A DNA stretch of 64,000 bases from Phallusia mammillata (lineage: Eukaryota): NCBI GenBank assembly GCA_965637545.1, contig OZ281501.1, positions 4,526,001 to 4,590,000 on the forward strand, written 5' to 3'. The translations under genes and the position numbers were made by a program. Below, piece by piece: positions 35,801-60,112 of the stretch. The notes beneath the pieces are model-generated. The model was given only the letters and a program-made list of their open reading frames with translations. It made no database searches and was not told the origin of the DNA. Numbering within the stretch: position 1 is the first letter of the stretch; each line of letters starts with the position of its first letter.

Positions 35801-38800
35801 ACACAAGGTAATTTGTGGTTTAATGTACAAGTAGTGACAGTTACAAACAAAATAGAAATTGAAAATTTATTGGTGCCATCTGTGAAGACATGTATACTGT
35901 CGCCATATCTGGTTTGCACTTTTTTGTGAGCTTCTTTGGTATAGGAATTTCAATAATTGCGTGTGATTGTTATAGGTTTATTGTATCACCGGTAAGGACA
36001 TGAGTAACTGACAAGTTTGTTAATTAAACGCACGATTATGTGGGCCAGTAACATTTTTCCACGTGTATTAAAAAAACTGAGATACATTTTTTTTTCTATA
36101 CTTGTAAGTCTAAGAACATGCTGCAATGAATAAGTGGTATTAAATCGCGCCTAATCAACCATAAAATTACGCCATGCTGCTTACAAACATTGATAAAATG
36201 AAAACCATTTCGGGCTACTTTAAAAGCACGAAAAAAAAACTATAAATATTTGTCAGCTAGCGAACTTTTTTTATTGGTTTCATTGATTAAACCAGTGTTA
36301 CTCAAACTTCTTTGCTTCAGGACACACCTAAAAAATAACCGCATCCTAAAAAACAGAAATTTTGAGGTCGCGCCATTGACGGTAATATGGAAAAAAACAG
36401 TCATTGAATATGTCACATAATTTAACTTTTTCGTTATCTAAAGGCGCACCTAACCAGAGATGTAAGTCGGACACCACTGGATTAAACTATTGATTAAACA
36501 TGTTTTTGAGAAACGTCTGACCTAACACGGTATATCAGAACCATAAGGCTTATGTACAATATGGAATGTTATTGTTTTTGACAGATCAAATCTGGCGCAA
36601 CTTTATAACGACCGCTCGGTACTGGAGAATCACCACATTAGTTCAGCTTTCCGCCTCATGCAAGAAGATGACTGCAATATCATGTCGGGCATGAACACTG
36701 ACGATTACCAGTAAGCTCTCAAACCACTTTATAAGTACCAGATAAGTACTAAGATCAAAAAAACTCTGGACTGACTATCACATGTTGCCTGTTTTCAACT
36801 TTATAGCAGAATAATCTGCAGAAGAAACTGATCATGCCGGGTATGCTTTAAAAATGACTTTTAGCATAATTAAATCATTGTAATTCGACTTTCAGCGCAT
36901 TTACCACCGAGTCTGTATGGCTCGGTGGTATGAGGGCTAGAAAAGGCTTCTTCGAGGATCGAGGGTTCGAATTCCAATGGTCAAATGACATATACAAAAG
37001 CTTTCAAACGGGCCTGAAAACCGAATTTAGCAAAAATCAAAGCCTAAATAAAGCCCAAACGTTGGTGAAACTTAGGCAAAAATAGTGACTTTGTTATAAG
37101 TCCCAAATCAAGCCTTAAGCTCCTTGATAAACCGGCTTGTTTCGGCATGACCCCTTCAAAAGGCCCGACGTACTATGAAAGTCAAACTAGAGTTTAAGCT
37201 ACCGTATAGTCTTAGTTGTTGGCTGCATAAATAAATGTTTCAAAAAGTGTTTTGATTTGTTGTAAAAATATTACAACAGAATGAGAACCACGGCCTCTGC
37301 ACAACGACTGAACACATTGGGCGGGTCTTAGATTAATTTATGTTTAATTTGTTTAATGATGAATTTCAGAGAATGTCGAGCACTGATGATTGACATGGTT
37401 CTAGCCACCGACATGAGTCAGCATTTTGGCCAGATCCAAAAGATGAAGTCAGCACTTTCTCATCCCGAAACGTAAGTTTTAAAAATCCTAAAGTCAGTGG
37501 TCGGCAACCTTTTAGGCGACGGGTGCCAATTTACTTGTTATTTCCATGTGTTAATGACCTCGTGTGCCAACGTTTTTCTAAATAATTGTGGTTCGTGCCG
37601 GCTGATATCAATAATAAAGAGAAAGCAGAGTGTTTTGTACATGTAAGGATGAATTTTAAGACAATGGCATGATAAAAACTAAAAACAAGCAGTGTAACAG
37701 GTTAAATTGTGACTTCAATATAAACACGGAAATCGGTTGGCGTGCCATGAAAAAGCACTTCGCGTGCCAGGGGTTGCCGAACCCTGACCTAAACCGAAAA
37801 CGTTCTTGACCGTCCCTACAGCTGACTGCATCGTATGAAAAGGCAATCGGTTCTCGTTTGGATTCACGTGTGCTGAAGAATTAAGTTTTTTTTGCAGACT
37901 TGAAAAATCCCGCGCCATGTGTCTTATGATTCACTCAGCTGATATTAACCACCCTTCGAAACCGTGGCATCTTCATCACAAGTAAGTTATAACTTATCTT
38001 TATATCTGAAAACAATCGCACCGAGCAGTAGAATAATAAGCAGTGGTTGATCATATTGATTATACCTTCATAATATTAAAATAATTCTAAGTAAAGTGAG
38101 ATGAGAAGTCGGGGAATGGCGTGCAAACGATATCAAACATTTGGTTGTATACACAGTTGATAACAAAGCGGGAAGTCAAAATACCACATGGTTCTAAAGG
38201 GTGTTACTGGACACCGCATCATACTGCATGCGGGAGTATAAGCCCAAAACGGTATCTGAGACATTGGTATATTGTTATTGTATTACCAACATGAGGTAGC
38301 ATGTGGTACCATACGGTACCATACGGTAAGAACCGGTCCTAAACGCTCAGTCGAACAAAACAATTTTAGCCTGCAGTGGAAACAGCACTTCTTAAATCAA
38401 AAACCATCAACAGCAGCTCTTAAATTGGCGATCACTGTGTACCATTTCCACCTCTAACACCAATGAGTGTTAGAACCCTTGGTTCAAACAAAATTGATTT
38501 AACCAAAGAGATAAGCTTAGATAATTTGCCAGTCTGGCATAAGAAGTCCCCTGTTCAAATTGGATCATAAACTGTTGAATAAAGAACTGACGATGTCATT
38601 TAGGCAAAAAATATACCTGAAACTAACTGATTGTGTTTTGAGAGGTATGTGGTTGATTTTGTATTTTAAATACTATATTTATTATTTTATTTTCGCTGAA
38701 AATGCGACTTTATACTCGCTGCCGATGACCGAAATGTGTTTTTGTAATTTATAAATTAATGTTTTTGTGCAGATGGACAGAACGGTTAGTTGTTGAGTTT

Positions 38801-41110: not shown

Positions 41111-43147
41111 CGCTGACGTCAACGCTCTTTCGATTCGAATGTGATTTATTTTTTTGTTCAGTGGAATACAAAGAGCGAACTTGTTTTCGAGTTTTTAGTT
41201 GGCCCGCTCCCCCCCCCCCCCCAACAATTACCTCGACATTGCGGATATGACGTCATCACTAATGATGAATCGCACACGACAGTTTTTGGGGTTTTCAAAA
41301 TATGTCTACAATGGTGTAGGTGTACTTTCACTTTAGTACCAAGTTTTAGATTTTCATACCTTTGTCTGTAAAGCATTTTAGCATTTGCAAACTAGATACC
41401 ATGTTCAAACTAGAATACCGGAAGCCCTGTTTTGCTAACTATGGGAACCAATCGGTTTAGCTGAAACATGGCAACTTTACTATTATTTTTCTGTAACTGG
41501 CATGGCATCCAAAAATCTATAGTTACACAAAAATCACTCGCCGTTCAAAGACTGACATATATTTTATTTAATGTTGCGTGTATTTTCTTATTTTTGAGAG
41601 CTGCATCGAATTATAATGATTTTTCAATGTTTATTTGTTTAAAGTTCCTTTGTTTCACTTGTATTTCAACCTATCTTCCCGGGAGCGGCGTTGCCCGGTT
41701 GTGTAATGTGTATGAGAGCCCTAATCGAACACTAGCCTGTGGTGCAGACCCCTATATTTATTTTCAACGTTGTGTAATGCACTCTTCGCCCATTTACTTC
41801 ACTTGTATGTTTTTTTGTTTTTATTTTGACTTGGCGCTGAGGTGGGTAGCCTAGACTGACAAGGGCTTAAAGTTGAAGAGAAAATGTATACGTTTAGATT
41901 GCGGTTATGGTGTTTTCAATTTGTGACTGTTAAGAAAAACTCAACAACTGAAGTTGTACAAAACCCACACGAAATTTTCAATGATTTACTTATGTGATCT
42001 TTTTTGCAAGGTAATTTAGATAACCAAAAATGTAAGCTTTGTAAACTACGGTACTAAGTTGTACAAAGCGAATTTGTAAAAACTTTGGGGAAAACAGAAC
42101 CTGTCAAATTTAACCCAGTTATCATACTGCACACTTTTTTCTTTAAAATGGCAATCGCTGTATAAAATGGAGTATGTGCAAATCAATTCCAGTTCTTTAT
42201 ACCCTATTGGCTACGTCAAAGTTTCCCACGTTTTGTAAAACTCAATGATCTAGAAAAATGCGCCTATGTCTACAAATGTTTCTCAACCAAAAATCCCACG
42301 CCAACGCTACATATTGATCTGTATAATGACGTTTGAGATACCACGCTGGTTCACATTGCACGACGCTGAATAGTCAAAAGTACTGGCACTGCCCAATGTT
42401 GAAACGCAATGGTTGGGCATTGCCGTAGTTCAGATCCCCAAAATTCCTACTCCTATTGATCAATTACGCAAGGCCTGATTGGTTTTGAGCTATCAATGTC
42501 ATGTCGATTTATTACGGTGCAACGTTAAAATACCAGCGATTTGGGTAATGTCGTTTTGTTGAAAGTCTTCCCGTCGGTTTCTGCTATGCTCCTTTGAAAG
42601 GGAGGTCACTGTGCTTTATTTGTAGCTGGCTACATACAAGTGATGCTATCAGTTCGTGTCGAATAAATACTGATGTACAAAACGCTCTGCTTCCCCATTT
42701 AGCTACAAGACAGCTATGAAACCATTGTAGATCATGATGACAGGCCCACTTTTAACGCATGTAATCAAAATATTGTTTCAAGGTACATCTGTTAAAAAAT
42801 TGTCACAAAAATGTTTCAAAATCTTACCAAACCAAAAAACAGGTTGTATCTAAACCCAGCACATCCAATTCACTTATAATTGTGTAATTTATCCTTAGAC
42901 CTGATAAAAGTGTTAAAATTGAAACCACCTAAACTTCTTACAACCCAGCAATATTTTGTAAGGTCTGTAGTATAACCAAGCTACCTATCTGCTTTTGTAG
43001 AAAGTAACAATATACTTTTTGACATTCAGTAGATTTGTATTTACACCCATAGTTCAAAGTCTATACACTTCTGGTGTCCACCACAATTTGAGAAGTTGGA
43101 TTATCGGTGTTTGTTCCAAGTCCAGTGAATGTCAATGAAAGGAAGAT

Positions 43148-43859
43148 CTACTTTGATCTTGCACGCATCTTTCTGCGCTTGCGCTTCAATCTTCGCATTC
43201 TCTTCTTCTTCCACTGAACATAAAACATCAATTTAATGGTCAAATTGTTCGAAAGACATAACTTGTAATATATAATGCAAACTCCAAACTTTCAGATAAT
43301 ATGCCAAGTGGGTATTAATAAGTTCTTCACAAAATAAGTAATATTGGCCCATTTCAACCAAAGCGGGCATAAACAAGCATTAATGATTAATATAGCATGT
43401 CAAAACTAACAAAGGTAATTGATATTCCTTGAAAACTACTCACAAACATTAAGCATATCAACTTCAGTTATTGTTTAATTTTAATTCTTTACTTCTAAAC
43501 ATGTGGATAATTTCAAGATTGATAGGAACAAAAAAGGTTCAACATGCACTTAACCATTTTAGCAGAACCACAGAAGTAAAAAACGTTATTTGTGTGGCAG
43601 GTTATAAAAACGCACATTAAAATAAACACATGGAATTGAGATAAAGTATATTTTGTTAAAAGCAACCATGGATTACAAATCGTACTGTTTACAAGAGATA
43701 TGTGCTACAGAAGCATTAGCCAAAGTTGCAAACTGCCTGCTCAAATGTCAACGTGGACCAAACTTTTCACGAGGCCATATTAAAAAAATATCACACAACA
43801 ATTAAATAAGTTGGTAAGTAATTGCTAAATATAAAACATTTTCTCACCTTTCCGCGCAT
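43148..43859 (-). CDS. RPL41: Ribosomal protein L41 (eL41/eS32), 25 aa
   Basis: Coding exons 43859-43848 (MRGK|GTGAG) and 43213-43148 (CAG|[21 protein letters not shown]). Nearly identical to the canonical [25 protein letters not shown]. Confidence 0.96.
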
Positions 43860-44942
43860 CGCTGTTAGATAAAACGATCCGCAAGAAACAGATTCGTAAG
43901 GATTTTACTTTCAAGTTTTCCTGTTAACGTCTCATCTAAAAGGACCGCATCCAAGGCAATTTCGCTGCAGCGAAACTAAAGTTAAAGGATTACGTACATA
44001 TTTTAATTTTTAATATTTTGTCAACAATTTTAAAAAACAAATTATCAGGAATAAATAATAAAAACTACCTACAAAAATATTACTTGCATAAATCTTCGGA
44101 AAATCTGTGCTACTTTTATGGAAATCTGTATGACGAATCGCATAGAGTATTTTACTCTTCAGTCTTCACTCTTCACATCCCAAAGAAAGTTCAGTACCGT
44201 AGCTGATAAATCAGGATAAAACGTTGCTACATAAAATACAAACAATTCTGCCTGCAAAAGAGGTGCTTACTCATTTACTGTAATCACTGAAAGCAACCAC
44301 AATCAACTTCACATTGTGTTGACTATTGACCCAAAACATCACTGAAGCGAAACGTTGTTTGCAAGAAATACTTAAAGGTAGTCGAGCACAAATTTAAAAC
44401 TTTTTTTATCGCAGAGTCACTCACGCAAAATAAAGTAACGCAAATGTTAACATATAATTTTAGAACTACTGTTTCCCACTGCAAGCTGTTTTAGCATGGA
44501 AACGGGGCTTAAATCAAACAATTTGAAACAAGACAATTCACTATTCACATCACAATGCTAGCGAGGTGAAATCCCTCAAACCTTCGTTACAAAAGTATTG
44601 CGCAAATTTCGTCACTATATATATGTTACTGCGTGTAAAATGAAAACAATATTTCATTGTCGTTTTTTTGTCATCATTGTTTTCAATTTCGTTATGCTTT
44701 GTTTGGCACTTGGCAGTGATAAATTTTAAAAACATATCGCGTGAAAAAAAGGGTAAAAATTTAGCCAGGTTGGGTGTAGGTTTAGCAAAGATATTCTGTA
44801 TTTTTTTAATAATGATTGGATGTATGTAATTGTCAACAGAATTAAGCCCACTGCTAAATAGTACTATGCATTAATTGTATATGTTGGGAATGTGAATTTA
44901 TATTATTGCATCTGCACCATTTGGCTTTAATGGAGAGATAAC
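43860..44942. promoter_or_regulatory. Shared upstream region of head-to-head RPL41 and DCUN1D5 (possible bidirectional promoter)
   Basis: Divergent start codons about 1.08 kb apart. Pyrimidine run CCTTTT on the minus strand near 43940 (TOP-like). Perfect 16-bp palindrome TTTCGCTGCAGCGAAA at 43960-43975. Confidence 0.4.
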
Positions 44943-47687
44943 ATGCCTTTGCAACACAGCAAGAAGAGAAAATCTCATCATTCTGATGATTCAAATGCCA
45001 AACGTACAAAACACAGGTATCTCAAATAACAATCCTTTCCCCTTGTTCATTACAGCATTGTTAACAAACATCCGAACATTATTCAACCAGTACCATCTAA
45101 AACTGCGATCCCACTAAGCCCACTTAGCCAATGCCTAACCCGCTAAGCCCATATGTGCTACTTATTTTTTTTACTTTTTCAATTTTCTACTTTTTTGAAA
45201 AATGGATACAAGTAGGGCTATGGAATTTGAGTGAGGGTTTGTAATTAAACACTATAATTTAATCTCCTATAGGCGACCTCGGCTTGGCGCAGACTTTGCA
45301 CCCTAGTAAAAATGTTACATTTCTACTTTAACTTAATGATAATGTGAGAATAGGTGTTTGTAGTAATATCTGTTATTTTTTTGGTAAATTTTAGTAACAC
45401 AAGGCTACAGAAAGGTATTGATGAACTGTGGTCAGCTTCTTCAAAACAAAGAAGTTCTACTCCGAAACAAAGCGAACCATTTTCTGTCAAAAAATGTATA
45501 AAATGGTTTAAAGAGTTTGCAGGTATATATGTAACATTTTCTTTTTCCGGGATTTCTCCTTTTTTGGTGCCTTTTATTATACAATATTGTTTTAGGAAAC
45601 AAGGAACAGATAGAACCAGATGGAGTAGAAAAGTTATGTGAAACATGTGAAGTTGAACCACATGATATTGTAATGTTGGTACTTGCTTACCACCTTAATG
45701 CACAAACTATGGGCTTCTTTACTCTCAAAGAATGGACTAAAGGAATGCACAAGCTCCAGTGAGTAATGAACACACTTCCACTATCAATTTCATTTATATG
45801 TTACATACAATTATAACATAGTTGGGTTCAGAAAAAAAAAATGTTTTCACTAATTTTTTGTTTTGGACCACAGGTATATTATGTATTGATTTGGGTTAGT
45901 TCAGCTATTTCTTAACCAAGGATAGAAGCATCATAAACAGATATGTATCACAACAGCCACACGGGTGTGCCAGAAAAAGAACTCTCATTTTGATGTAGTG
46001 CAAAAATGAAGCTCTGGCCAGTAACAAATAAAAATAGAATTAAAATATTTTTTGTGTGTAATTTTTGAATCCAACAGACGGTTCATTATGCTTTATTATA
46101 TGTTAGTACCCATATAAACAGGTTTGGAAAACTGGACATCCAATATTTTGTGAGCAAAACTGCTGGAAAAATGACTTAAAATCATGTCTGACTTCAAAAC
46201 TGCAATCAGCTGTTTTGGATTGCATGCTTGTAGGTTTTATAATGTGTTTTTAATTTAAAGGTGCGATTCCACTGTGAAGCTTCAAGGAAAACTGCCTTCC
46301 CTGCGATCATCTTTAGATGAACCTTCATTGTTCAAATCAGTGTACAGATATGCATTTGACTTTTTGAAGGTAGGTTGTTTTCACAAAACTCTTAACGCGT
46401 GACAAGTGATGTATCGAATCAATTACTATTTGATTAAGCAGCCATCATCTACATGGATACACAGTTGAAAATTTTAATCCATGTTAACTGTGGTCATGTA
46501 ATACATACATGGAGTTTGTATGCATAAACGTTGAATACATATCACTCTCAATAGGTGTCTGTATTTACCACTTGACTGCTGTAGCCAACTTGTATAATGC
46601 AGGCTATGTTATGTTGCCAACTTTATAGATACCACTTGACCACCATAGCCAACCTGTAAAAATATTGTGTGGCCACTGTGGCTAATCTATCCTCACCTCA
46701 ACCAAAATGATTGTTGGATTTTTCAAAGAAATACCTATTTAATAAGGTGTAAGTTGATTTACAGGTTCCCCACAGTGGTCTAGTGGCATTTACAACCACG
46801 CTTTTCAAATGCTTATCATCCAATTACTTAAAAGTGAAATATGTTTTAAATCTAAATCATAAATGTAGTAAGCATTATAAAACCTGACATAGCAATTATT
46901 GGTAATACCAATATTAAACCCATTACAATCGTAAAGGTTTCCATATTGTCACAGCTCAAACAAATTACAGTGCCTACTTTCGGTGTTGTTTTCCCCTTTA
47001 CACAAAACTGGAAAACTATTTTCAAACTTTTGTTGACAGGAACCTGGCCAAAGGACTGTAGATTTGGGCACTGCGAAAGCTATGTTGGATGTTCTACTTT
47101 CTGATAGATGGTCACTACTAGACAAGTTTCAAAATTACTTAGATGTATGTTGTAATGTTGGTTGTAACTAGGCATTGTAGTAGTAATTATGGGTCCTTTT
47201 TGACACTTTCTGCTTCGTTTATTCTGGCTATACGACCGAAGGGGTTACACTTTTTAGTGCTATTTTTCTTTAAACTATAACATTGCAGACAGAACTGGTT
47301 TCTAGTGGGTTACACTTTTTAATCGACCTTTCTCTTTACACTATAACATTGGCAACAGAACTTGGTTGATATTATTGCAAGCAAAATTATGTCCATGTTT
47401 CTGTTGACAAGAAGAATTACCAAAAAAGCGTTTTTAACTTGTACTCTTGCTTCTCTAAAGGGCTGCAAAAACAAAGTCATAAACAGAGACCAATGGAACA
47501 ACGTCCTGGAATTTAGTAGAATGATTCAGCCTGATTTATCAAACTATGATATGGATGGGGCATGTGAGTCAATAAAAGCAATAACTCACTGAAAAAAAGT
47601 TCTTTAAATTACGATCTTTTGTTTTCAGGGCCAGTGCTCCTTGATGAATTTGTTGAGTACATCAAGATGCACAACGAGATGTTGTAA
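44943..47687 (+). CDS. DCUN1D5: DCN1-like protein (DCUN1D4/5 clade, neddylation co-E3), 7 exons, 246 aa
   Basis: Exons 44943-45016, 45395-45522, 45596-45758, 46261-46369, 47040-47144, 47461-47563, 47629-47687 (741 nt, phases consistent). Motifs [90 protein letters not shown] near 47770. Confidence 0.93.
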
Positions 47688-48233
47688 TAGTTTATTTCCT
47701 TACACTGTTACGTTTTTATGTGTGCCTTTTTCTTTCTAATATTGGCCGTTATATCGCCAGTGTTTTATTTAATAAATCGTCCAGCAGCGTGTACGTGTTT
47801 GTTGTAACTTTCAGGCATATCTGATCGGTTTTGCAAGTGATAATGAGTTTATTTTTCTCGTGAAAGAATATTATAGGCGGTACGGTTTGAAGTGTGTATT
47901 TACGGTCTTAGGCGTACGTAAAACTTACGGCAACAAATAAGTTGTACAAAATAAGTTTAATATGCAAGAAACCTAGTTTTAAACCGTTTTTTTTGGCAGC
48001 GCAAAAATGTAGCTTTGTGGGTCGATCCGTTGCCTGGAAGTGGCAGTGTTTGAGCCGTGTCTTGTCCTTTGAAAGATATATACGAGTTTTCTAACGTGGG
48101 GTCCATGAACTGCTCCGAAGCGTCCGTAGCCTACTCTGAGTTCTAGTTAAGATTTTTTTGCATGTTTGCTACAATTAGCATGTGTATATTTCCCGTTCCT
48201 GATTTTGATCATTATGATGCCTTTTTTTCTGGG

Positions 48234-48405
48234 TGAGCTTGGACTTGCGCCCGGTCCGAGAACTTCTGGTAGGTGGCGCAGCAGAGCATGGGCGTTATGT
48301 TGCTGACTCTTCATAAACCCAAATTGCTGTAACAGCACCATAAACGCCTATGCTCTGTTGCGCCACCTACCAGAAGTTCTCAGACCAGGCGCAAGCCCAA
48401 GCTCA
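48234..48405. mobile_element. GC-rich 172-bp foldback element
   Basis: Arms of about 70 bp: TGAGCTTGGACTTGCGCC..GGTAGGTGGCGC..GTTGCTG / CAGCACC..GCGCCACCTACC..GGCGCAAGCCCAAGCTCA. Confidence 0.85.
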
Positions 48406-48608
48406 GTGTTAGTAGCTCTACCTTTTTCTGTACATGGATAACCGCTTTTGTCGGGTAAATATGATTTTTTGAGGAGTCCCTGACCTGACCAAATGCAGGT
48501 GAAGAAACACTGCCCGGTGTTGCAAGGTCAAGATGACCAATTTATTTTCAGCCTATTGTGTTTCGGTATAGCAAAAATGTTTTAGCTGATTGGGCTTAGC
48601 CTTAAAAC

Positions 48609-49099
48609 TATGGGGCGCCGTTGTCGAAAAAATTAAGTTGCCGCAACTTAATTTTTTCGACAACGGCGCCTTAAGGCCGTTTTGAAAACAAACAAAAAAC
48701 TTGCAAGATAGCTAACTTGCGGCAACTTAGCGTTGCAAGTTAGCTAACTTGCCGCAAGTTAAGTTATCTTGCGGCAACTTAGCTAACTTGCAACGCTAAG
48801 TTGCGGCAAGATAGCTATCTTGCGACGCGAAGTTGCCGCAACTTAGCTAACTTGCAACGCTAAGTTGCGGCAACTTAGCTAACTTGCGACGCTAAGTTGC
48901 GGCAAGATAGCTATCTTGCCACGCGAAGTTGCCGCAACTTAGCTAACTTGCAACGCTAAGTTGCGGCAACTTAGCTAACTTGCGACGCTAAGTTGCGGCA
49001 ACTTAGCTAACTTGCGACGCTAAGTTGCGGCAACTTAGCTAACTTGCGACGCTAAGTTGCGGCAACTTAGCGTCGCAAGTTACCCGGTGCATTGTGGTT
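48609..49099. repeat. Left terminal inverted repeat with 32-bp tandem subterminal array
   Basis: About 11-12 imperfect units of CAACTTAGCTAACTTGC(G/A)ACGCTAAGTTGCGG, preceded by a perfect 57-bp palindrome at 48614-48670. Confidence 0.9.
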
Positions 49100-49121
49100 G
49101 TACATTCATTTTCGGCAACAC

Positions 49122-50474
49122 ATGTACATGTGGTCATACGATGGACTGTTTAATGGAATTTCGATACCCACACATTTTTGGCTTGTACGAAGACTTAAAA
49201 GAACAGCTGAAATGGTAGGCATTTGTTTGTAGTTTTTTAACTATTTTAATTTATTAGCTTTTTAAACTATTTACTTTTTATGCATATAGGGACGCCATCG
49301 TAAGAATGTTGATGTGGAACACCTAAGAGAATTTTTAACTCTGAGAATAAAACCCAGTGTGATTTGTCGCTTGCTTGACATTTCAAGACCAACACTGAAA
49401 AAAGTGATAAGTGAATCTAATCTGTCCATACCTACTTACAGGTATTGTTTTTTAAAACATAAGTAAGGTTACCCTTATGTGAAGGACTACTTATATCTAT
49501 TTTTTTCCAGCTCAATTTCGGATCAAGAACTTGACACTACACTAAGAAATTTAAAAGAAAAACATCCCTCATCTGGTGAAGTGATGGTAAATGGACATCT
49601 TAAAGCACAGGGCATTTTCATTCAAAGAAAAAGGCTTCGGCAAAGTTTGCACAGAGTTGATGAAGAGGGAATAAGAGCGCGGCAACTGACTACAATTGCT
49701 AGAAGGAAATATTCTGTTCCCTGTCCGAATTACATTTGGCATATAGATGGTACCCACAAGTTGATTCGATGGAAGTTTGTGATTCATGCTGCAATTGATG
49801 GGTACAGCAGGTTAATTACATACTGTCACTGCGCTGACAATAATAGGTCAGGGACTGTATTGAATTTGTTTGAAGATGCTGTGGCAAAATTTGGCCTGCC
49901 ACTAAAAGTAAGAAGTGATTATGGTGGTGAAAATGTTCAAGTCTGGAGGTATATGTATGAAAGAAGACTTAACAGTAAATGTGTGATTGCAGGAAGTTCA
50001 GTGCATAACCAACGAATTGAAAGACTTAACAGAGACATCAATTCACAAGTTGTAAATCGATTTCACAATGAATTTACATACCTTGAGGATTCAAACTTTT
50101 TGGATGTTACAAGTTTGATAGAGCTTTTTTGTGTTCATTTTGTATATAAAGATGTCATAAATAAAAGGCTGGCAGAGTTTGTAGAAGGTGCCAACCATCA
50201 TTTACTCTCCACTGAGAACTATTATTCCCCTTTACAACTTTTTCACATGAACCGTCACCTATTGCAGCTTCAAGCCTTAAACCCATGTGATGAGATTGAA
50301 GTTGATGACATAACATATCCCAGTACTAACAATGTTGATGTGGATACTGATTGGTTACAGTTGCCAGAAGATGTGAAACAAAGCCTGAGTGAAGCAATAA
50401 CCCAAGAAAGTGACAACATTGATAAATATAAATGTGCTGTTCGATTTGTCAACAACTATCTTGCAGAACAATAA
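49122..50474 (+). CDS. DDE transposase/integrase-core protein with N-terminal HTH, 3 exons, intact
   Basis: Exons 49122 (or ATG 49212)-49214, 49290-49441, 49511-50474. HTH-like [28 protein letters not shown], then [10 protein letters not shown], YPxxG-like HPSSGEVMV. Catalytic triad: WHIDGTHKL (D; IDGYSR follows), VRSDYGGEN (D), [11 protein letters not shown] (E). No stops or frameshifts seen. Confidence 0.92.
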
Positions 50475-51034
50475 ATGCTGCTTTTTCTTTTCTGCTCATT
50501 TTTGTCACATGTGCTGATTTTTAATGCTTTTATTATGGCAATGTGAAAAGAAATAAATCGGATAATACTTTCAGCTTGGAACTGATACTGCAGCAGGTGG
50601 AATATGAGTGTGGCAAGCAATATGACAATAGGGACAGTGGCACATGAGGTGACAGTGTGTGGCATTGCAAGCAGAACAGTGAAGAGGTATATTATACATT
50701 TGTTTAAGGATACACAAATACTAATGCCATGATTTTTTACAGTGACTTTTAACAGCAATAAACTAAAAACCTGGTTATTCAAAAGGACATGAAATTCACA
50801 ATGAAATATTGACACAACATCCAATTAAAATAAGTTGTGTAAATATGTTTTGTAGTGGATAAAAAAGGACAATCACTTACATGTAGCTAAAATAATCACA
50901 ATCAAGAGGTAAAGCAACTTCATATAAAAATAAATGTAGCAGAATTTTAAAATTGCTTGGTCATGTACATTTTCATTGACACATATGAGATACAATATAC
51001 GGTTCAGTACAATGGTATATTTTTTTTTCATGCT

Positions 51035-53814
51035 TTAAACTCGGCCAAACCCGGGTGAATTGCATATGCCAAATTCCATTTTACTTTTAAAAGCTTCATA
51101 ATCATCATGCTGCAATGGAATGCTTAAAATATTGGAACATGTATTTGCAAGGGGAAAATGAGACAATTCAGTAAATTGAAGAGTAGGTGGTGGTGAAAAT
51201 CCTAATGGGGGTATTTCATCTGCCCCAGTGGCAAAAATTAAGATACCTTGAAGCGAGCATTCAGAATCTTTTTCTGTAATGAAAAATATTTTAAGATAAT
51301 ACACACAACAATCAATATAACAAAATATTAGTCAAAGTACCTCCCACTTCATCTACAAAGTGTCTCCACCAGCTTAGCACCAGGTTTTCCCTATGTCTTT
51401 TGTTGCTTCCAGATTCAGATAATTTTGGGGAAAACATTGCTATAATTTTATTTCCTGAAAGCGGATCACTGCAGTCATTTGCAATAAAAAGCATTTTAAA
51501 TGCATTTGGTGTATTTTTCATTTGCTCCAAGAGGCCAGTTTGGTTTAGGCCTAAACTAAACCTAAAAATAAACAAACCTTATTGAACTTGCAAATGACAA
51601 TTTTGATTGTAACAAACCTGTGAAGTGGTTCTGACTTGCCTTCTGTGTAAAACTTCATTGCAGTCTTTATAATTTCATTTTTACCCGTTAAATTTGTGCA
51701 ATGTGTGTGGCAACCAGCTAATTTCAAAAAGTTAAATGAATCCATCAAGCAATCATTCAGTTCATCAAGGGATATTGCATCATGTATCTGCATAAGTAAA
51801 ACAAGTTAACTATGTAACAAATACACACATATATACAAACAGGAAATGATGAAAATTGCTTTACCTTCTGAAGCTGAGAAATATATTCACAACCAATATC
51901 AGTCATATCCGTTAGAGCCTCCATATAGTCCCTCGGGAGATTTAGAATTTGACTGTACAAAAGCTTAGAAAAACATTTTGGACCTGGGCCACCATGCAGT
52001 AGTGTGAGAGATATGAGAGTTCCGTAGATGTAATACAAATCTTTAGCAACAGCTAGATAAAAGAATACACATGAAAATGCTATGTTGTAAAAAATGTTTA
52101 AGTATTTAAAGTATTACCTATCGGATTGTGAGTAAGAAATCTTTTATTTTCTTTTCCTTCGAAAATTATACTGTTCGTGATTGCATGCATTACCAGGCGC
52201 AAAAATTCTCTAGTTGGACCTCCAGCATCCACTGCTCCTTCAAATTGGCCATTTTCATCACTGAACTCAACACTAATACTGGCCATTGGTTTAAAAAATT
52301 TGCGTTTGACAGTTCGCACAGCCCCATCTAATATGTTTGACCTAATAACATGAAACTTGTTGACAGCTGATTCATCAATTTGTTCTTGCAAAGTTTGTAG
52401 GCACTGTTCTGCGGTGACATTGTTTTCGGATTTCCTGCAATGTAAATATTCGTTGGTGGCAGTGTACATTATTGACAAAAATTAAAGGAAATATAAATAC
52501 ATATGTAACTGACTCTGATATGGATGGTTCTCCAAGCAAAGATTCTTGAATGGCCTGCTGGATGTCCCCATCACTGTCATCACTCGAACAATTAAATTCT
52601 TCATTGCAACTCGCAATGAGATTGACATACTCACTACAGAAAAAAGATTTAACTTGCAAATTTGTTATGTATTTCTGTATTTTTTCTACTTGTAAACTGA
52701 AGATTCTGCAGTGGTTTCAGAACATTCATTTGATGTATCTTCTAAAACATTGCCTTTTGAACTGTTGGAAGTATCATTGCATTCCTAAAGAATGAAGTTT
52801 AATATATTAGGTTAATGTACAAAAGAATAAATGGCAATTGTAAAACTAACATACCATGTCACAACGGTTAATTGCAATTTCCACAGTTTTGATTGCAAGA
52901 TGATCCTTTGTGCAGATATATATTTTTTTAGTATTTAATGCAAGCACTGCTCTGGCATTCCACATAAAGTTATCATCCACTGCTGCTTTTGTCAGTAAAT
53001 TAAGGCCTGGTTTGTGCACCAAGAAGTCAAAAGCAGAAAAATGTGAAAAGCATTCTCCAAAAGCGTTGATGATTGCTGTTTTCATTTCAGTCATGTTCCA
53101 TGCATTGTTAATTTGCAAAACATGGTGCAAACCCATTGTTTTTAATTTGTTTTGGCATCTTGGTATAGCCATAAACCATTCACCATTCATTATTTGTATT
53201 GTTTGGGAAAACTCTTGAAGTGGTATGCACACCACAGTCCTTGAACCGTACCGTTGTTTTTGTTTATTTTTAAGAGATAGTTTACGACCTCCTTTGATTG
53301 CAGTTGGTGTGTATCTTTTTCCTGTGTATGAATTAAATGGACGGAAAACTTTCTTTCGCTCCTATTGAAACAGGCAAAAACCATGTATAATATTTTTTAC
53401 ATGTATCCAAATACAAATGTAAACATGCAAGCTTACAGGTTGAAATTCATCATCACTATCGGTTAGAGTGGAATGACTTGGTTCATTTTTGTCATTATCA
53501 AAAGTTGGATTCTGCCAATACATCACAAATATCATATAAAGCAAAGGCATTTTGGCGCAGGAACCCCAGGTATAAACAGATACAAACATGCTTAGCAATC
53601 TATAGCATGTGATTTTACATACATTATTTGTCTGCCTTGTCCCCTGGTGATGCACCTGTCCACTCCTGGAAGTTGATTGTCCAGTAAGAGTTCTACAAGT
53701 ATTAGCACTAACGCGTCCGGTTTGTTGCCTTGATAGTGTAGTAACAACTGAAGTCAACTGATTTACAACTTCTTGCAAGTCTAATTGCACGTATTTATCG
53801 TTGGATTCCATCAT
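51035..53814 (-). CDS. HECT-domain E3 ubiquitin ligase (G2E3-like HECT) with UIM-like motif, 10 exons, 707 aa, inside the transposon
   Basis: Exons (minus): 53814-53623, 53511-53437, 53361-52855, 52784-52690, 52633-52514, 52434-52118, 52052-51865, 51787-51618, 51561-51341, 51273-51035 = 2124 nt, all GT-AG, phases consistent. HECT motifs EGAVDAGGPTREF, LLHGGPGP, ILIFATGADEIPPLGF, and catalytic Cys in FPLANTCSNILSIP. UIM-like DGDIQQAIQESLLGE. Confidence 0.9.
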
Positions 53815-53955
53815 ACAATCCAAACCGCTATTATTATGTATTTATAGCAGAATACATACGCACTCAAGTGCAATGAAACGATATGAATGAGCAAAAGGAT
53901 TAAACATCATATTTCGCGGGTATTACAACCACGTTGCTGGAACCAGTTTCAGTTT

Positions 53956-54349
53956 CCCACAATGCACCGGGTAACTTGCGACGCAAGAAAGCTATCTTGC
54001 CGCAACTTAGCGTCGCAAGTTAGCTAAGTTGCGGCAACTTAGCGTCGCAAGTTAGCTATCTTGCCGCAACTTAGCGTTGCAAGTTAGCTAAGTTGCGGCA
54101 ACTTAGCGTTGCAAGTTAGCTAAGTTGCGGCAACTTAGCGTCGCAAGTTAGCTAAGTTGCGGCAACTTAGCGTCGCAAGTTAGCTATCTTGCCGCAACTT
54201 AGCGTTGCAAGTTAGCTATCTTGCCGCAACTTAGCGTTGCAAGTTAGCTAACTTGCTGCAAGTTAGCTATGTTTCGTTGCAGGTTAGCTATCTTGCTGCA
54301 ACTTAGCTATCTTGCGGCAACTTAATTTATTCGACAACGGCGCCCCATA
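53956..54349. repeat. Right terminal inverted repeat with the same 32-bp array in reverse orientation
   Basis: Reverse complement of the left array (CCGCAACTTAGCGTCGCAAGTTAGCTAAGTTG units), about 11 units. Confidence 0.9.
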
Positions 54350-54360
54350 TATACAAAGGT

Positions 54361-54402
54361 CAAGGCCGGGGGTGCGCGGCACCCCCGTACTCTACGCCAG
54401 TG
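54361..54402. mobile_element. Orphan 3' end of a Harbinger-type MITE abutting the IS3EU-like element
   Basis: GGGGGTGCGCGGCACCCCC hairpin then CTACGCCAGTG (CAGTGGCGTAG-type TIR). No matching left end was found left of the transposon. Confidence 0.45.
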
Positions 54403-54569
54403 ATTCAAATACGTGTCTAAATTATATTTCAGGAAAGACACAATAGCTAATTTAAAATATTTTTACAAACAATATCGAATGGCTAAAGAGCAATCATTCA
54501 AATATTCCATAAGGAGGTTCAAAAATCTTTTAGTAAAGACACAACACCTACTTAAAAATATTTTTACAG

Positions 54570-56849
54570 AAAGACAGAATGGCCAAAGATTGTGGAATGG
54601 ATTTGGAAAAATACAACGTTGCATTTGTGTCTGTATGGCCAGGACCAGTACGGACGGAATTAATAAACGCGGAATTAGCTTTGAAAACAAGCTCTGTTGA
54701 GTATTTTGCACACTTGTTAAATTGTATTTTTGTGCCACTGTTTTTCATTTTTAAATGTCTAACAGCTCACTTGGTTATTTGAACATGGAGAAACAACTGA
54801 ATTTACTGGAAAATGCATTGCAAGTTTGCTTCTTGGTAAGTCACTACATTTGTTTGGGGCTATTACTTTGTCTGTTAGGACTATATCATTCATGATATGA
54901 CATGGTCAGAAGCGAAATGTGTGTTAGCTTGACTGTTTTCAGCAGAGCATGCAATGACTGATAGGTATCAGATTTCCTAAGTTGAGCATGCATAAACATT
55001 CAATTTTGCGTCTGGTGCCGTAAGTCCCTGTTGTTTGCTTACTGACTTTGATGTTGCTAGTTTTTTGATAATTTGTTTCATTTTTATCCTTGTTGAAGAC
55101 CACTGATTGAATGTTTTATTCTCGCAATGAGTATGATGCAAAGTTGCTTTATTCTTTAAAAGAATTTTGGTCCAGTAGTGTAGGTTTATTGTATGACCAT
55201 CCAATAAAACACAAGTTGTCCAACCCATTGTTACGTGATAGAGCCCCATGAGTGACATATTGTGTCCAAAATAATACAGTGGGTACAGGGAAAGATATAT
55301 AACTTTCCCGATTTCTGCAAACTGGTGAGCTTTAACAAGAATTAGATTAGCCAAATTAAGCAAAGCTTATTGGTTCTAGAATTTGAGTGTAATAATGCAC
55401 ACTGAATACTAATATTTAATGTCTACTTGAAAATTAAGTGGGCATATTTACATGAAAATAGTTTCAGTTTCGGCATTCCTTCAAACATTTTTCTCCCTAT
55501 CAGAAAAAAATGTTGAAGACCACTGTTCTAAACCAGTAAAACTTAAAGGGTTAAATTTAATTAAATTCATTTTTTAAGTTGCAAAAATTTAATAAAAAAT
55601 GATTAATTCAACTGACTTCAACAAAAACATACAGTTTAATAGTCAACTTTTTGTGAGTTTAATGAGTTCAGACATTACCCATCCACTTCCAATAAAAACA
55701 AAACAAACAATCAAATCATCTGTTTGCAGTGGAGTAATAGTGTATGTTGGATTTCCTCATACTCTTTTATTTTGAGATTGGACACAACAGAAATACGAAA
55801 TATACCTGTGTATTTGTTTGTGCTGTGTTGTAACTTTTGTACATTCAATTTGCAGTGGATTTTATTTTACATGTTTCAGACCCTAAAATCATGAAAAAGT
55901 CTGGACAAGTTTTGCTTTCAAGTGACATTGCAGAGGAGTTTGGTTTAAAGGATGTAGACGGTAACATGGATTTTATTTGTTTTTGTAAACTATTTCAGTA
56001 CCACTGACTATTTCTTGCTTAATTTAAAAACCACAATCTAGCAAGTCATCTTGAGTTTTAAGTTTTAATTCTCCTATAAAGGAGTGTTAACAAAGTGTTA
56101 CTCAGGAGGATATTTTCTGGGGTATCTATGTCTGTCTGTCATACATTTGTTTTAAACCAAGTTTTACATTTATTTTGTTGCACCCAAAGAATTTGCAATA
56201 ACATTACAGTTGACATACTTGTCTACCAACAAACTCAAATTATGTAAAAGTAAATGGTAAATTAATGCGGATGATGACCGAAAAAAGTAAGCTATTTCAA
56301 CCAACTTAAAAAAAAATTCTGACAAATGTTGTACTGAATTTGTCTTTTTAAAAGTTACTGCTCTATCATCAAACAAGTCAAAAATAAACTATTGCACTAT
56401 GCTTGTGGCTGATATGATTTGTTATCTTTTTGTGTCAAATAAACTTATAAAAGAGTACTGTGGCACAAACAAATTGACATTCTTTACCTCAAATGTTAAT
56501 GCTTAACTAGTCAAGTCAACGATGAATAAAACTTTAATTGCATTGTCACTTTATCAAGCTTTTCAGTGGTAAACGGTTTCATAAAAGATCAACCGCACTG
56601 AAAAAACATGTTGTTATCGAAGCATGTTTACTTTTAGTTTTTATACAACAGATGACAAAACTTTTTTTATTTTACTCAGAGAAACACCCAGTAAGCATAA
56701 GAAGTGTCAAAGGAATGTTAGGTGGATCTGGAGCTCTATGGATTGCAGACTATATTCCCAGCTTCATAAAGTTGCCAAAATGGTTGTTTTTCATTCTTGG
56801 GTCTCTTGCCAAAACTCCTGTGAAAAAAGATGCCAGCAAATATGCCTAA
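54570..56849 (+). pseudogene. DHRS1: DHRS1-like short-chain dehydrogenase, 3' half only (5' exons absent in the window)
   Basis: Exons 54570-54695 (KDRMAKDCGMDL..VSVWPGPVRTE), 54766-54835 (FEHGETTEFTGKCI), 55880-55960 (DPKIMKKSGQVLLSSDIAEEFGLKDVD), 56680-56849 (WIADYIPSFIKLPKW..*). These match the DHRS1 C-terminal half. No Rossmann or YxxxK exons were found between DCUN1D5 and this point. Confidence 0.8.
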
Positions 56850-58219
56850 CTACCCCAAAGAATACTAACAATCTTTCATTTTGTTCAAATCATTTGAATA
56901 ATTATGAAGTTTGACAAATGTACATTAAAGTTTTGCTAAATAATGATATATGCAATCAAAATATCTAATACAACATGCATATTTGACTTGGTTTAAACAA
57001 AATTTCCATATTAGTATCTATTTTGGTAAACTATGTAAAAAAAACTATGTATGCAATCTTTCATCCTATTTCTGCAGGTTTATCATCCATACATTCAGTG
57101 AGTTTAATTGTTCTTTTTTACTTTAAATTACTGTATAAATCTTAATTGAATTCAGCTCAATGATTCTAAAAATGATGCCCACATTATTGTGTTTTTGTGT
57201 CTTTTTACTCTCAAATTGGGGTGAGAGGTTGTTATTTACTGTGTTTGTAAATTTGCAGTCAAATGTTTGTAATAAATTACACGACTATTATACATTCTAA
57301 ATGTAGCAGTAAAGCGCCAGAACCCTGCCTGCACTTATCTAAACAGGACAATTCTGTTATACTTGTAGGATTTACTATAGAAAATGTAGTAAAAATAGCT
57401 GATTTGATTACACTAAAGCTAACAAACAAGTGAAATTGTGTCACAACCTTTGATCACACTAAACTTTTCCTTCTCATTAAAAACTTGCAATGTTTTTGTT
57501 CATAGTTGATTAGGTTGCAATTTTTATGTGGTGATATAATACTTTATGTGCTTTTGGTGGTTAGCTACTTAGCTTTGTCTGTGAGAACAAAATCTTTAAC
57601 ACAGAAAATGCTCAGACACCCTAAAGTTACATTAAGATTATAACACAGTTTTTATATGACTACCGTCACATACACATACTTTTTTGTGCCATAATTATTA
57701 AAACATGCGTAACACAAAGGCAATCCCACCTTTGTCAAGTTCAGTAAACAATGCAAATGCCAATGTGTGGTTTTAATGTTTGTGGTTAGTTAATCATAAA
57801 CCATGTGACAGAAATGAAAGTCAGTTCAAGCCCATCAGCAAAAAGTCATGAGTTGCAAGGTTTGTAAATTACTATGCACCAGGTTACTTTCATATATTTT
57901 GCAATAGATTGTATGTTTGTATACAACAGGCTTTTTGTATGGTTAAAATTATTTCCTTTAACTGATGCATTAGGTAATGCAAAAATATTTTTTTAGGTTT
58001 CAGGATATGTTTCTGCTCTTTTAAAATGAGGTTACTATGTGTAAAAATAAGAAACAGTATCAAACTCAAATATTGTCATTAGTGATTATATTTTGGACCA
58101 ATACCTTTTCTGTGATCCAGCACAAACACCCGTATGTTTGAAAAGCATGGAATGTTCAGAATATAACACTGAATCTCATCAGCAGGTAAATTTTCTGTAC
58201 TACAGGGTAAAACAGAAAC

Positions 58220-59572
58220 ATGCCATATTTGAAAGAGAAAGTGTGCCTTGTTACTGGAGCTTCACGTGGGATAGGAAGGGGAATTGCTCTTCAGTTGGCA
58301 GTCAATGGGGCTACATGCTACATCACTGGTAGAAACTCGGAAAAGCTGGAACTTGTGGTAGATGAGGTACTGTATTGATAGCATATGAAACACTAGCAAT
58401 TTTGGACCAAATAGTAAATATACTTCGGTCTTGTACTGCTGAGTATTACTATTTTACTGCAACTCATGTCCCTTATCTTTGCATTCGAATTGAATGCCAC
58501 ACTGTATCTAATACAGAAGATTATTCGGCCTACATTGAATTTGTTCTACCAAACTTTTTCTCAGCTATATTAACAAACTGTGCATCAAACTCTTTCTTGT
58601 TGTAAACTCCTGCCATATAACATCTTGTATTGAAGGTGTAACTAATAAATCCACCAAGCCTACCCTGTATTTTTTGTTGTTTGTTATGTTTGAACATTGT
58701 GTAGCTATCCAGATTGGTAACTGTTTTAATGCTAGCGGATTGCTATGTTTTCCATCAATAAGTGAAATAATCTTAACTCAACTCATATGCAATAAACATG
58801 TAAAATAGTTTTTTTTTTCAGGCAAAACTATTGTTTTGTTTATCTAAGAGTTTAGGTAATGGCAATTTACACCCACAAAAAATTAGAAACTATTTAAAAA
58901 CTGTTAACAAAAGTCTGTTCAAAATTGAGCTATTACTATATTTACAGGTAACTTTATATGTCAAGTGACACCACATTTGTTAAACCACTTGTAGGCAAAA
59001 AAGAGGGAAGCTTGTGGAAAAATTATTCCAGTGCAATGTGATCACAGTAATGATACTGAAGTTGAAAAGGTTTTTGACTTAATCGACAAGGAGTATGATG
59101 GGAAACTTGATCTGCTGGTCAACAATGCATATTCAGCTGTTAGTGTAAGTTGCTTCCTCATGTTTATGATGTTATTGAAAATAGGCCTAAGACAGGTTTT
59201 TAACCTAGATTCTCAGACTTAAAGGTTTGCAATGTGTTTCCTAAGACAAAAAGTCTGGGCAAGTTTTTAATAGAACTTTGAGTAAACTGCATGTTGGGGT
59301 CCACAAAAGTAATAATTTATTAAAAGGGTCCATTGCACCCAAAAGCTTAGAAATTGTTAATATAAAAAATAAAAAGTACTTGATACTCCTGGGAACACTA
59401 GATGACTTTTTTACATTGTTTTGTAATATAGTTGGTTCATACTGTGATGGTAATGAATGATGTAGTGCCTAATTACATATTTTATTGCGTAGTGGTTGTT
59501 GGAAAATGCAAAGCAGTGTTTTTGGGATCATCAAATAGATGCTTGGGATGAAGTTAATCAAGTTGGATTGAG
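58220..59572 (+). CDS. DHRS1: DHRS1-like short-chain dehydrogenase, exons 1-3, running into the assembly gap
   Basis: Exons 58220-58366 (MPYLKEKVCLVTGASRGIGRGIALQL..ITGR), 58995-59144 (IPVQCDHSND..GKLDLLVNNAYS), 59493-59572 (FWDHQIDAWDEVNQVGLR). Confidence 0.88.
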
Positions 59573-59912
59573 GTACACCACAGAGTTTTTTTCACATATT
59601 TTTTATTGTTTGATCACAAAATGTTTGAGGGACAGAAATAAGGTAGGCATTGAGGGTTTGTCAAAAGCATATTTACCTTCAATCCTTGCTGTTGCCAGGC
59701 TTAACAGCTATCATGGAATAATGAAATTTTGCCTACAATGTAGTTGAATCAACACACTTCCCTTTTTGTTTTAAAAAAAGTTTCTAGTCATTTGTAGGAT
59801 GCAAACTGTTGGATCTGGAGTACATTTTTGATTCACATTAGTCCACATAATGCTTTTCATCATTTTAATATGGCAGTAAGAAAGGATTAATTATGCAGGG
59901 TTGGTGCAGTGA

Positions 59913-60112
59913 NNNNNNNNNNNNNNNNNNNNNNNNNNNNNNNNNNNNNNNNNNNNNNNNNNNNNNNNNNNNNNNNNNNNNNNNNNNNNNNNNNNNNNNN
60001 NNNNNNNNNNNNNNNNNNNNNNNNNNNNNNNNNNNNNNNNNNNNNNNNNNNNNNNNNNNNNNNNNNNNNNNNNNNNNNNNNNNNNNNNNNNNNNNNNNNN
60101 NNNNNNNNNNNN
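59913..60112. other. Assembly gap (200 N)
   Basis: Run of exactly 200 N, a round placeholder size. Confidence 0.99.

Follow-up and report, generated by a model that had tools for sequence, protein, structure and literature searches.

The IS3EU and GingerRoot transposons constitute one lineage, and complete IS3EU families always have TA..TA termini and usually a 6-bp target site duplication (TSD) (Kojima 2023, PMC10045372); the GingerRoot superfamily has been reported in fish, coral and sea anemone (PMC6839031), and fungal IS3EU elements, with ends of the form TAYGG..CCRTA, carry an alpha-kinase gene opposite the transposase and sometimes a TET/JBP dioxygenase gene (Kojima 2025, PMC12730594). 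In this report, we describe a DNA transposon of this type from the sea squirt Phallusia mammillata, located in a 64,000-nucleotide stretch of contig OZ281501.1 (positions 4,526,001 to 4,590,000; hereafter, the window), whose second gene encodes a HECT-type ubiquitin ligase. The element is very probably an autonomous, recently active IS3EU/GingerRoot transposon with its own convergent HECT ligase gene, which is inherited with the transposase across animal phyla and would act for the element. The HECT gene has long been part of the transposon lineage and is neither a host gene nor a captured fragment. The superfamily is known, and the HECT second gene is new to the literature that we searched: full-text searches for HECT in IS3EU, HECT in DNA transposons or G2E3 as a transposable gene returned nothing relevant, and the words HECT and ubiquitin are absent from the texts of PMC6839031 and PMC12730594.

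The likeness of the window element to the published IS3EU and GingerRoot elements lies in an integrase-like or IS3/IS481-like DDE transposase without an HHCC finger, the 6-bp TSD and the TA..TA termini (PMC6839031; PMC10045372), and its difference from them in a predicted ubiquitin-like (UBL)-UIM-HECT protein as the product of a conserved second gene. The fungal elements share with it the superfamily, the termini and a second gene in opposite orientation that encodes a protein-modifying enzyme; however, this enzyme is a kinase or a DNA dioxygenase rather than an E3 ligase, the hosts are fungi rather than animals, and the fungal TET/JBP genes move among transposon superfamilies, whereas the Phallusia ligase co-diverges with its transposase. 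As a kinase takes the equivalent position in the fungal elements, having a partner that modifies proteins may be typical of the IS3EU superfamily as a whole. Transposons are known with DNA-binding partners, proteases, kinases and demethylases, and those with ubiquitin- or SUMO-pathway domains include Zisupton and some MULEs, whose Ulp1 protease is presumed to help against the host. In these too a mobile element has an enzyme of a ubiquitin-like system, but Ulp1 is deconjugating and often fused to the transposase, whereas the predicted Phallusia enzyme is a conjugating HECT ligase encoded by a separate, spliced gene. A functional analogy, without homology, is offered by herpesvirus ICP0, a RING rather than HECT E3 ligase that counters host silencing and is likewise brought along by a genetic parasite. 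An enzyme for ubiquitin conjugation that a transposon encodes itself, and that is conserved together with the transposase in different phyla, would add a new class to these accessory functions.

The boundaries of the element lie exactly at 48609 and 54349 of the window; it starts with TATGGGGCGCC and finishes with GGCGCCCCATA, and it opens with TATGGGGCGCCGTTGTCGAA and has the reverse complement of TATGGGGCGCCGTTGTCGAA at the other end. As a preliminary description of this locus had proposed, near-perfect terminal inverted repeats (TIRs) of 38 bp with one mismatch enclose two convergent genes, the transposase on the plus strand and the HECT gene on the minus strand, which are arranged as follows.

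48609..48646, plus strand: left TIR (TATGGGGCGCCGTTGTCGAA...), 38 bp, with 37 of 38 bases pairing with the reverse complement of 54312-54349
49122..50474, plus strand: transposase gene, 402 aa, three exons (49122-49214, 49290-49441, 49511-50474) by splice model, both introns removed in RNA contigs
49746-49748, 49917-49919 and 50019-50021, plus strand: putative transposase catalytic residues D161, D218 and E252, with spacings of 57 and 34 (DD34E)
50475..51034, no strand assigned: intergenic 560 bp separating the two stop codons, covered entirely by RNA contigs
51035..53814, minus strand: HECT ligase gene, 707 aa, ten exons (53814-53623, 53511-53437, 53361-52855, 52784-52690, 52633-52514, 52434-52118, 52052-51865, 51787-51618, 51561-51341, 51273-51035) by splice model, nine junctions in RNA-type contigs
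54312..54349, minus strand: right TIR, closing ...GGCGCCCCATA, 38 bp, one mismatch to the left TIR

The transposase matches the Pfam families rva_4 (E 6e-67) and rve (E 7e-10), and D161, D218 and E252 show no variation among 20 aligned homologues, which come from tunicates, fishes, a crinoid, a coral and a nemertean. Its second exon encodes a helix-turn-helix with weak matches to HTH_23 and HTH_7, so that, as predicted from the sequence, the N-terminal part is a helix-turn-helix rather than an HHCC zinc finger, in keeping with the integrase or IS3-IS481 type. The gene had been described as uninterrupted, which was wrong: two short introns lie close to its 5' end, and both have RNA support. The terminus is identical at all copies of the element and adjoins 6-bp TSDs, and the form TATGG...CCATA recurs in every copy and family that we examined, including the fish and coral elements described below; in addition, the animals that yielded homologues of the transposase include fish, coral and others with reported GingerRoot elements. 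The window element is therefore best classified as an IS3EU/GingerRoot-type DNA transposon, and the earlier assignment to IS3EU holds on the basis of the 6-bp TSD, the TA..TA termini, the TAYGG..CCRTA form and the type of transposase.

A search of the 240-Mb assembly for copies of the element (family 1) gave several contigs with copies of full or nearly full length, 94-99% identical, in addition to fragments and short derivatives. Every family 1 copy ends in TATGG...CCATA, and matching 6-mers flank at least 10 family 1 insertions, including the following.

C8:4596567: TSD TAAAAC
C6:6024137: TSD TATACA
C1:36093443: TSD TGAAGC
C4:30917686: TSD AAAATC
C4:8549694: TSD GTTTTG

Three independent insertions (on C8, C6 and C1) show 0 substitutions in both coding sequences, indels disrupt four other family 1 copies, and TSDs also flank several derivatives shortened by deletion to 0.4-1.5 kb. 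The family 1 transposon is recently active, because three insertions are identical in both coding sequences and short deletion derivatives are flanked by TSDs.

Every full-length family 1 copy carries the HECT gene, and the pair extends beyond this family within the same genome. Family 2 comprises seven copies of 6.1 kb that are mutually 99% identical (for example, L034:3308-9434), with the TIR TATGGGGCGCCGTTTGTAAAA and 6-bp TSDs at four insertions; its transposase is 63% identical to that of the window and its HECT protein about 46%, and the convergent HECT gene, with UBL-like, UIM-type and HECT parts, lies about 0.5 kb past the transposase core. In a third group, whose transposase is about 32% identical, a convergent HECT C-lobe is again present, and genome-wide such a C-lobe was found 0.46-4.2 kb downstream in 27 of the 40 rva_4 loci. 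A search of the Phallusia genome with HECT exon 6 returned transposon copies only and no close host paralogue. Separately, eight transposon-type HECT C-lobe matches have no listed rva_4 gene nearby (C5:25468540, C5:27154965, C3:14917436, C3:16668035, C7:13954899 and others); they may be solo remnants, or the transposase may have been missed.

The same association was found in other animals. A teleost element from Brienomyrus brachyistius (L047:9561-16098; 6,538 bp) has the TSD TGCTGT and perfect TIRs of at least 45 bp, and contains a transposase, a UBL-like open reading frame (ORF), a UIM-type motif and HECT exons, and an element from the coral Desmophyllum pertusum (L045:9292-14521; 5,230 bp), with the TSD GAAATG, contains the transposase and at least the HECT C-lobe exon. 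The co-occurrence of the two genes inside TIRs across animals, which the preliminary description had proposed to check, is thus found in complete fish and coral elements. Both elements open with TATGGGGCGCCGTTTGTAAA, which corresponds to the first 20 bases of the Phallusia family 2 TIR; this identity over 20 bp among a teleost, a coral and a sea squirt would imply unusually strong conservation of the ends or may hint at horizontal transfer. The convergent layout was also seen in the nemertean Lineus longissimus, where the HECT gene is annotated and encodes 757 aa, and in the sturgeon Huso huso; the ENA assembly ERZ25067590 shows it in two families and has three copies, 99% identical and each on a different contig, that extend over both genes. 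TIR pairs sought in the 20-kb loci of Lineus, Huso, Anneissia and ERZ25067590 were not found, the elements exceeding the locus or their ends having diverged.

These observations bear on the possibility that the HECT sequence is a host gene that a nested or composite insertion happened to place between transposon ends, or a recent Pack-type capture in one family. Capture of host gene fragments does occur in DNA transposons, plant GingerRoot among them (PMC6839031), and the window copy itself has no TSD; however, this absence is accounted for by the chimeric flanks of that copy, and the gene lies inside TIRs with TSDs at several independent loci, recurs in two further families at 63% and 32% transposase identity and in the complete fish and coral elements, is full-length, spliced and expressed, and has, by its exon 6, only transposon copies as relatives in the Phallusia genome. 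We therefore consider accidental inclusion or recent capture extremely improbable. Sister elements without a HECT gene, which had been named as a finding that would refute the proposal, were looked for, and families 2 and 3 and elements in other phyla carry one.

Co-divergence of the two genes points in the same direction. The distance matrices of the transposase core and the HECT C-lobe correlate across 10 lineages (Mantel Spearman r 0.84, p 1e-4), and both proteins fall into the same two deep clades; this agreement argues against repeated capture, and linkage alone predicts it. In clade B, a deeper clade of the Phallusia genome, the HECT partners of rva_4 elements (L048:6544-7764 at G000:C2 and L038:5568-6839 at G000:C3, protein P0170) were observed to have a large first exon and zinc-ribbon motifs. 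Where the window protein has its UIM, the clade-B partners have an N-terminal C-x2-C-x11-H-x3-C finger with a weak match to the RAD18/WRNIP1 ubiquitin-binding finger, and because clade B replaces the UIM in this way, a ubiquitin-binding part ahead of the HECT domain seems to be required.

The dN/dS comparison that had been suggested could be made in part. When family 1 is compared with family 2, pN is 0.30 in the transposase and 0.37 in HECT, far below a saturated pS of 0.78, so that only pN against pS is given and a proper dN/dS is not computable; within family 1, the intact copies are identical, and the non-intact copies, with indels and in-frame stops, are uninformative on selection for an intact gene. 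By these values, the transposase and the ligase appear clearly constrained, and to a similar degree. The view that the ligase is maintained rather than a captured fragment is borne out by a gene that is full-length, spliced and expressed, has pN well below pS and is present in all full-length copies.

To characterize the ligase itself, we built a minus-strand splice model independently of the preliminary description, and it gave the same result: ten GT-AG exons whose phases all close, encoding 707 aa. In sequence order, the protein has a stretch of basic residues (aa 103-126), then a conserved module some 120 aa long and an acidic linker, and after these a UIM-type motif (DSDGDIQQAIQESLL) and the HECT domain.

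52894..53256, minus strand: likely ubiquitin-like (beta-grasp) fold, about aa 125-245, with the basic stretch before it; AlphaFold2 mean pLDDT 80.7, module kept in 18 sequences
52528..52578, minus strand: UIM-type motif DSDGDIQQAIQESLLGE, aa 309-325, a pattern match without a Pfam match
51038..52379, minus strand: HECT domain, about aa 349-707, by Pfam HECT on the last exon and alignment to P0170
51137-51139, minus strand: predicted catalytic Cys674 in PLANTC, 33 residues from the C-terminus

Compared with solved structures, the conserved module gave top 50 VIA matches that were nearly all UBL, PB1 or RA domains, at Z 5-6 only, including the TBK1 ULD, UBLCP1, Ufm1, the HHR23A UBL and the USP7 UBLs, and a best Foldseek E of 0.03; the modelled fold of this part of the ligase is likely a ubiquitin-like beta-grasp. 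The module also occurs elsewhere, in P0121, P0136 and P0141; these are an ENA protein of 2,095 aa in which it is repeated 12 times in tandem and Pfam finds no domain, a protein that matches the THAP domain four times, and a RING-B-box protein of the fish Megalops atlanticus. Further along, DGDIQQAIQESLLGE fits the UIM core (hydrophobic-x-x-Ala-x-x-x-Ser-x-x-acidic after acidic residues), but without Pfam support, and six-frame scans of seven loci with this pattern gave just three matches, in the window element, in family 2 (DEDTLIQEAIEASLLE) and in the fish element (EEDEAVEEAIRLSLLEE), at equivalent positions.

Pfam recognizes HECT on the last exon only (E 9e-9, profile positions 230-304 of 306), and exons 6-9 searched singly gave no HECT match. 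However, residues 391-705 align end to end with residues 120-452 of P0170 (E 2e-17), a protein of a related element on which Pfam HECT spans profile positions 6-304 of 306, and because of this match to a nearly full-profile HECT protein, the domain in the window appears complete. A feature search with exon 6 likewise points to HECT clusters; a phmmer search of the same exon against the PDB had a designed repeat protein as its sole match, which we rejected as spurious. A catalytic Cys about 32-36 residues from the C-terminus and a Phe at -4 are marks of active HECT enzymes, and the window protein has both, with Cys674 at 33 residues and the tail ...PGFGRV; moreover, the Cys is kept in all 10 lineages compared. 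The complete HECT domain with a catalytic Cys in PLANTC that had been proposed is thus supported by Cys674, the -4 Phe and the completeness seen through P0170, and the domain is predicted to be catalytically competent.

The HECT domain might instead be inert, as in mammalian G2E3, whose HECT has been described as non-functional (PMC3673628), and the protein might serve the element as a ubiquitin-binding scaffold or nuclear adaptor. The domain is indeed very divergent, with Pfam seeing the C-lobe exon only, and the related P0170 matches PDB sequences weakly at best; however, the Cys, its 33-residue distance to the C-terminus and the -4 Phe are kept in lineages down to 30% identity, as would not be expected of an inert domain across phyla, and pN is well under pS. 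An inert HECT is thus very unlikely in our judgment, and we continue to regard the protein as a probable ligase. G2E3 and the 'G2E3-like Metazoa' HECT family have been assigned to class IV (Grau-Bove et al. 2013, PMC3673628), and the Phallusia protein resembles them in a highly divergent C-terminal HECT domain and a patchy, expanded distribution in animals, but differs in having no PHD or RING-like zinc fingers: no N-terminal exon of the ligase gave a Pfam zinc-finger match, and the 707 aa hold no Cys/His-rich region. Because it has no such fingers, the ligase is not a G2E3 orthologue. Protein searches with exon 6 (14 ORF fragments) and exon 3 (25 representatives) returned no named HECT protein.

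Evidence that both genes are expressed came from contigs of four public sequencing runs, which we mapped onto the element. In two runs from two studies, RNA-type contigs lack all nine introns of the HECT gene, which read CT..AC on the plus strand, as well as both GT..AG introns of the transposase, with the joints exactly at the modelled coordinates, whereas a deep DNA-type run gave unspliced sequence with 0 of the modelled junctions; all nine junctions of the ten-exon HECT gene, which the preliminary description had suggested looking for, are therefore present in both studies. A single RNA-type contig, from 49057 to 53883, holds the spliced transposase, the whole 560-bp intergenic region and the spliced ligase, and there is a poly(A) signal for the plus strand at 50552 and one for the minus strand at 50529. 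Because of the position of these signals and the contig that spans the intergenic region, the 3' ends of the convergent transcripts probably overlap, which could be a source of double-stranded RNA.

The contigs of both transcripts start at the inner edges of two subterminal repeat arrays, located just inside the TIRs and inverted with respect to each other, each of about 300 bp and about 9.5 copies per end.

48701..49071, no strand assigned: left subterminal array, 32-bp unit, about 9.5 copies plus variants, by Tandem Repeats Finder, with an inverted match to the right array
53973..54310, no strand assigned: right subterminal array, 32-bp unit, by Tandem Repeats Finder, with an inverted match to the left array

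The 32-bp units are likely transposase binding sites. We propose a model whereby the transposase would bind the TIR and the 32-bp subterminal repeats and generate 6-bp target duplications, and the element itself would supply the promoter of the ligase gene, placed where the right array ends on its inner side. The ligase would form a Cys674-ubiquitin thioester and ubiquitinate a protein whose modification benefits the element, with the UIM and the ubiquitin-like domain binding ubiquitin or ubiquitin receptors.

Two kinds of target can be considered. The ligase may act on a host chromatin, silencing or repair factor, to which we give somewhat less than an even chance. Alternatively, the target may be the element's own transposase or strand-transfer complex rather than a host defence factor, the ligase either limiting the transposase level or marking the complex so that p97 or the proteasome takes it away and the 6-bp gaps become open to repair. 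Retroviral integrase and Mu transposase complexes need active removal, and an E3 with a ubiquitin-like domain and a UIM resembles the architecture of proteasome shuttles. The RAD18/WRNIP1-type finger that replaces the UIM in clade B, although a weak match, belongs to a class used at DNA-damage sites, and the tight co-divergence of transposase and ligase would also be consistent with a target of this kind; however, co-divergence is equally expected from simple linkage, and we consider such a self-directed role possible but rather unlikely. What probability remains falls mostly to targets of other kinds.

Several points weigh against our reading of the element as a transposon with an active ligase of its own that is inherited across animal phyla. 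The pair is common but not universal: a convergent HECT was not seen at 13 of the 40 rva_4 loci, many of which are fragments, nor at two loci of the crinoid Anneissia japonica (L041 and L053), whose transposases are 56-57% identical. The ubiquitin-like fold, although likely, is a modelled assignment built on modest scores (Z 5-6). The UIM-like helix proposed in the preliminary description stands in so far as the pattern fits and is conserved in family 2 and the fish element, but the UIM exon gave no match in Pfam even at E 10. Both the activity of the ligase and its target are read from sequence, and the RNA runs are labelled 'RNA?', their RNA nature following from the exact removal of introns. 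Finally, a second IS3EU protein may already be recorded in Repbase or Dfam. At one of the Anneissia japonica loci, HECT-like exons were observed upstream on the same strand.

On a bolder reading, an IS3EU/GingerRoot clade extending from cnidarians to vertebrates would carry an active UBL-UIM-HECT (or UBZ-HECT) ligase that predates the split of those phyla, is needed for transposition or for escape from silencing and accounts for much of the fast-evolving HECT genes that animal genome annotations call 'G2E3-like'; we hold this broad scenario to be conceivable but doubtful. Were it true, some of the rise in HECT copy number that is interpreted as adaptation of the host would reflect copies of a transposon, and G2E3 or another HECT gene of the host could have arisen by domestication of a transposon ligase. 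The hadal sea cucumber, in which 20 HECT/'G2E3' copies have been taken as adaptation (PMC9700323), offers an example, as these copies could possibly belong to the transposon HECT family, which is worth checking before adaptation is claimed. A clade-B relative in Ciona intestinalis is named 'ubiquitin-protein ligase E3C-like', not G2E3-like, in RefSeq, and because it is named there as an ordinary host ligase, transposon HECT genes do enter host gene sets. In addition, young and expressed elements in a laboratory sea squirt would be tractable for studying how a cut-and-paste element uses host proteolysis or chromatin ubiquitination.

The two flanks of the window copy do not match, as it reads TAAAAC on the left and TATACA on the right and so has no TSD. 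On the left, at least 10.4 kb agree at 100% with the flank of a copy 22 kb downstream (window 38155-48041 = C8:4586113-4595999). On the right, the flank equals that of the C6 copy, likewise at 100%, as far as a 200-N gap at 59913-60112, the stretch of full identity being window 54143-59912 = C6:6029800-6035569; after the gap the sequence restarts as a 100% repeat of window 38155-48608. Both coding sequences are identical between the window copy and the copy at C8:4596567, and the two differ only in the left array (about 40 bp in length and a few bases near element positions 440-461) and at three positions of the right array; the window copy seemingly switches to the C6 copy in the right array, with differences at element positions 5381-5406. 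Because its flanks are identical to those of two other loci and the right one breaks off at a 200-N gap, two real insertions have probably been joined by the assembly into the chimeric window copy; its missing TSD follows from the chimeric flanks, which leave the identity of the element unaffected. A real recombinant insertion, formed by ectopic exchange between the C8 and C6 copies plus segmental duplication, would accord with the switch point falling in the right subterminal array, and ectopic recombination is possible among 5.7-kb repeats at 98-99% identity; however, flanks that are 100% identical to two loci (at least 10 kb on the left and 5.6 kb on the right), with a stop at a 200-N scaffold gap and a restart 10.4 kb upstream of the element, are the usual signature of a false duplication or misjoin, and we find a recombinant origin quite unlikely.

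Two further features were noted at the left end. One is a palindrome found at this end only, which may contribute to end asymmetry or form a hairpin.

48611..48668, no strand assigned: 58-bp perfect palindrome, the TIR core followed by its own inverted copy, with GGCGCCGTTGTCGAA in both orientations 42 bp apart in all copies

The other lies outside the element, about 200 bp upstream of it, where a 63-nt inverted repeat (48234-48296 and 48343-48405; 92% complementary, 46 nt spacing) may be another small non-autonomous element.

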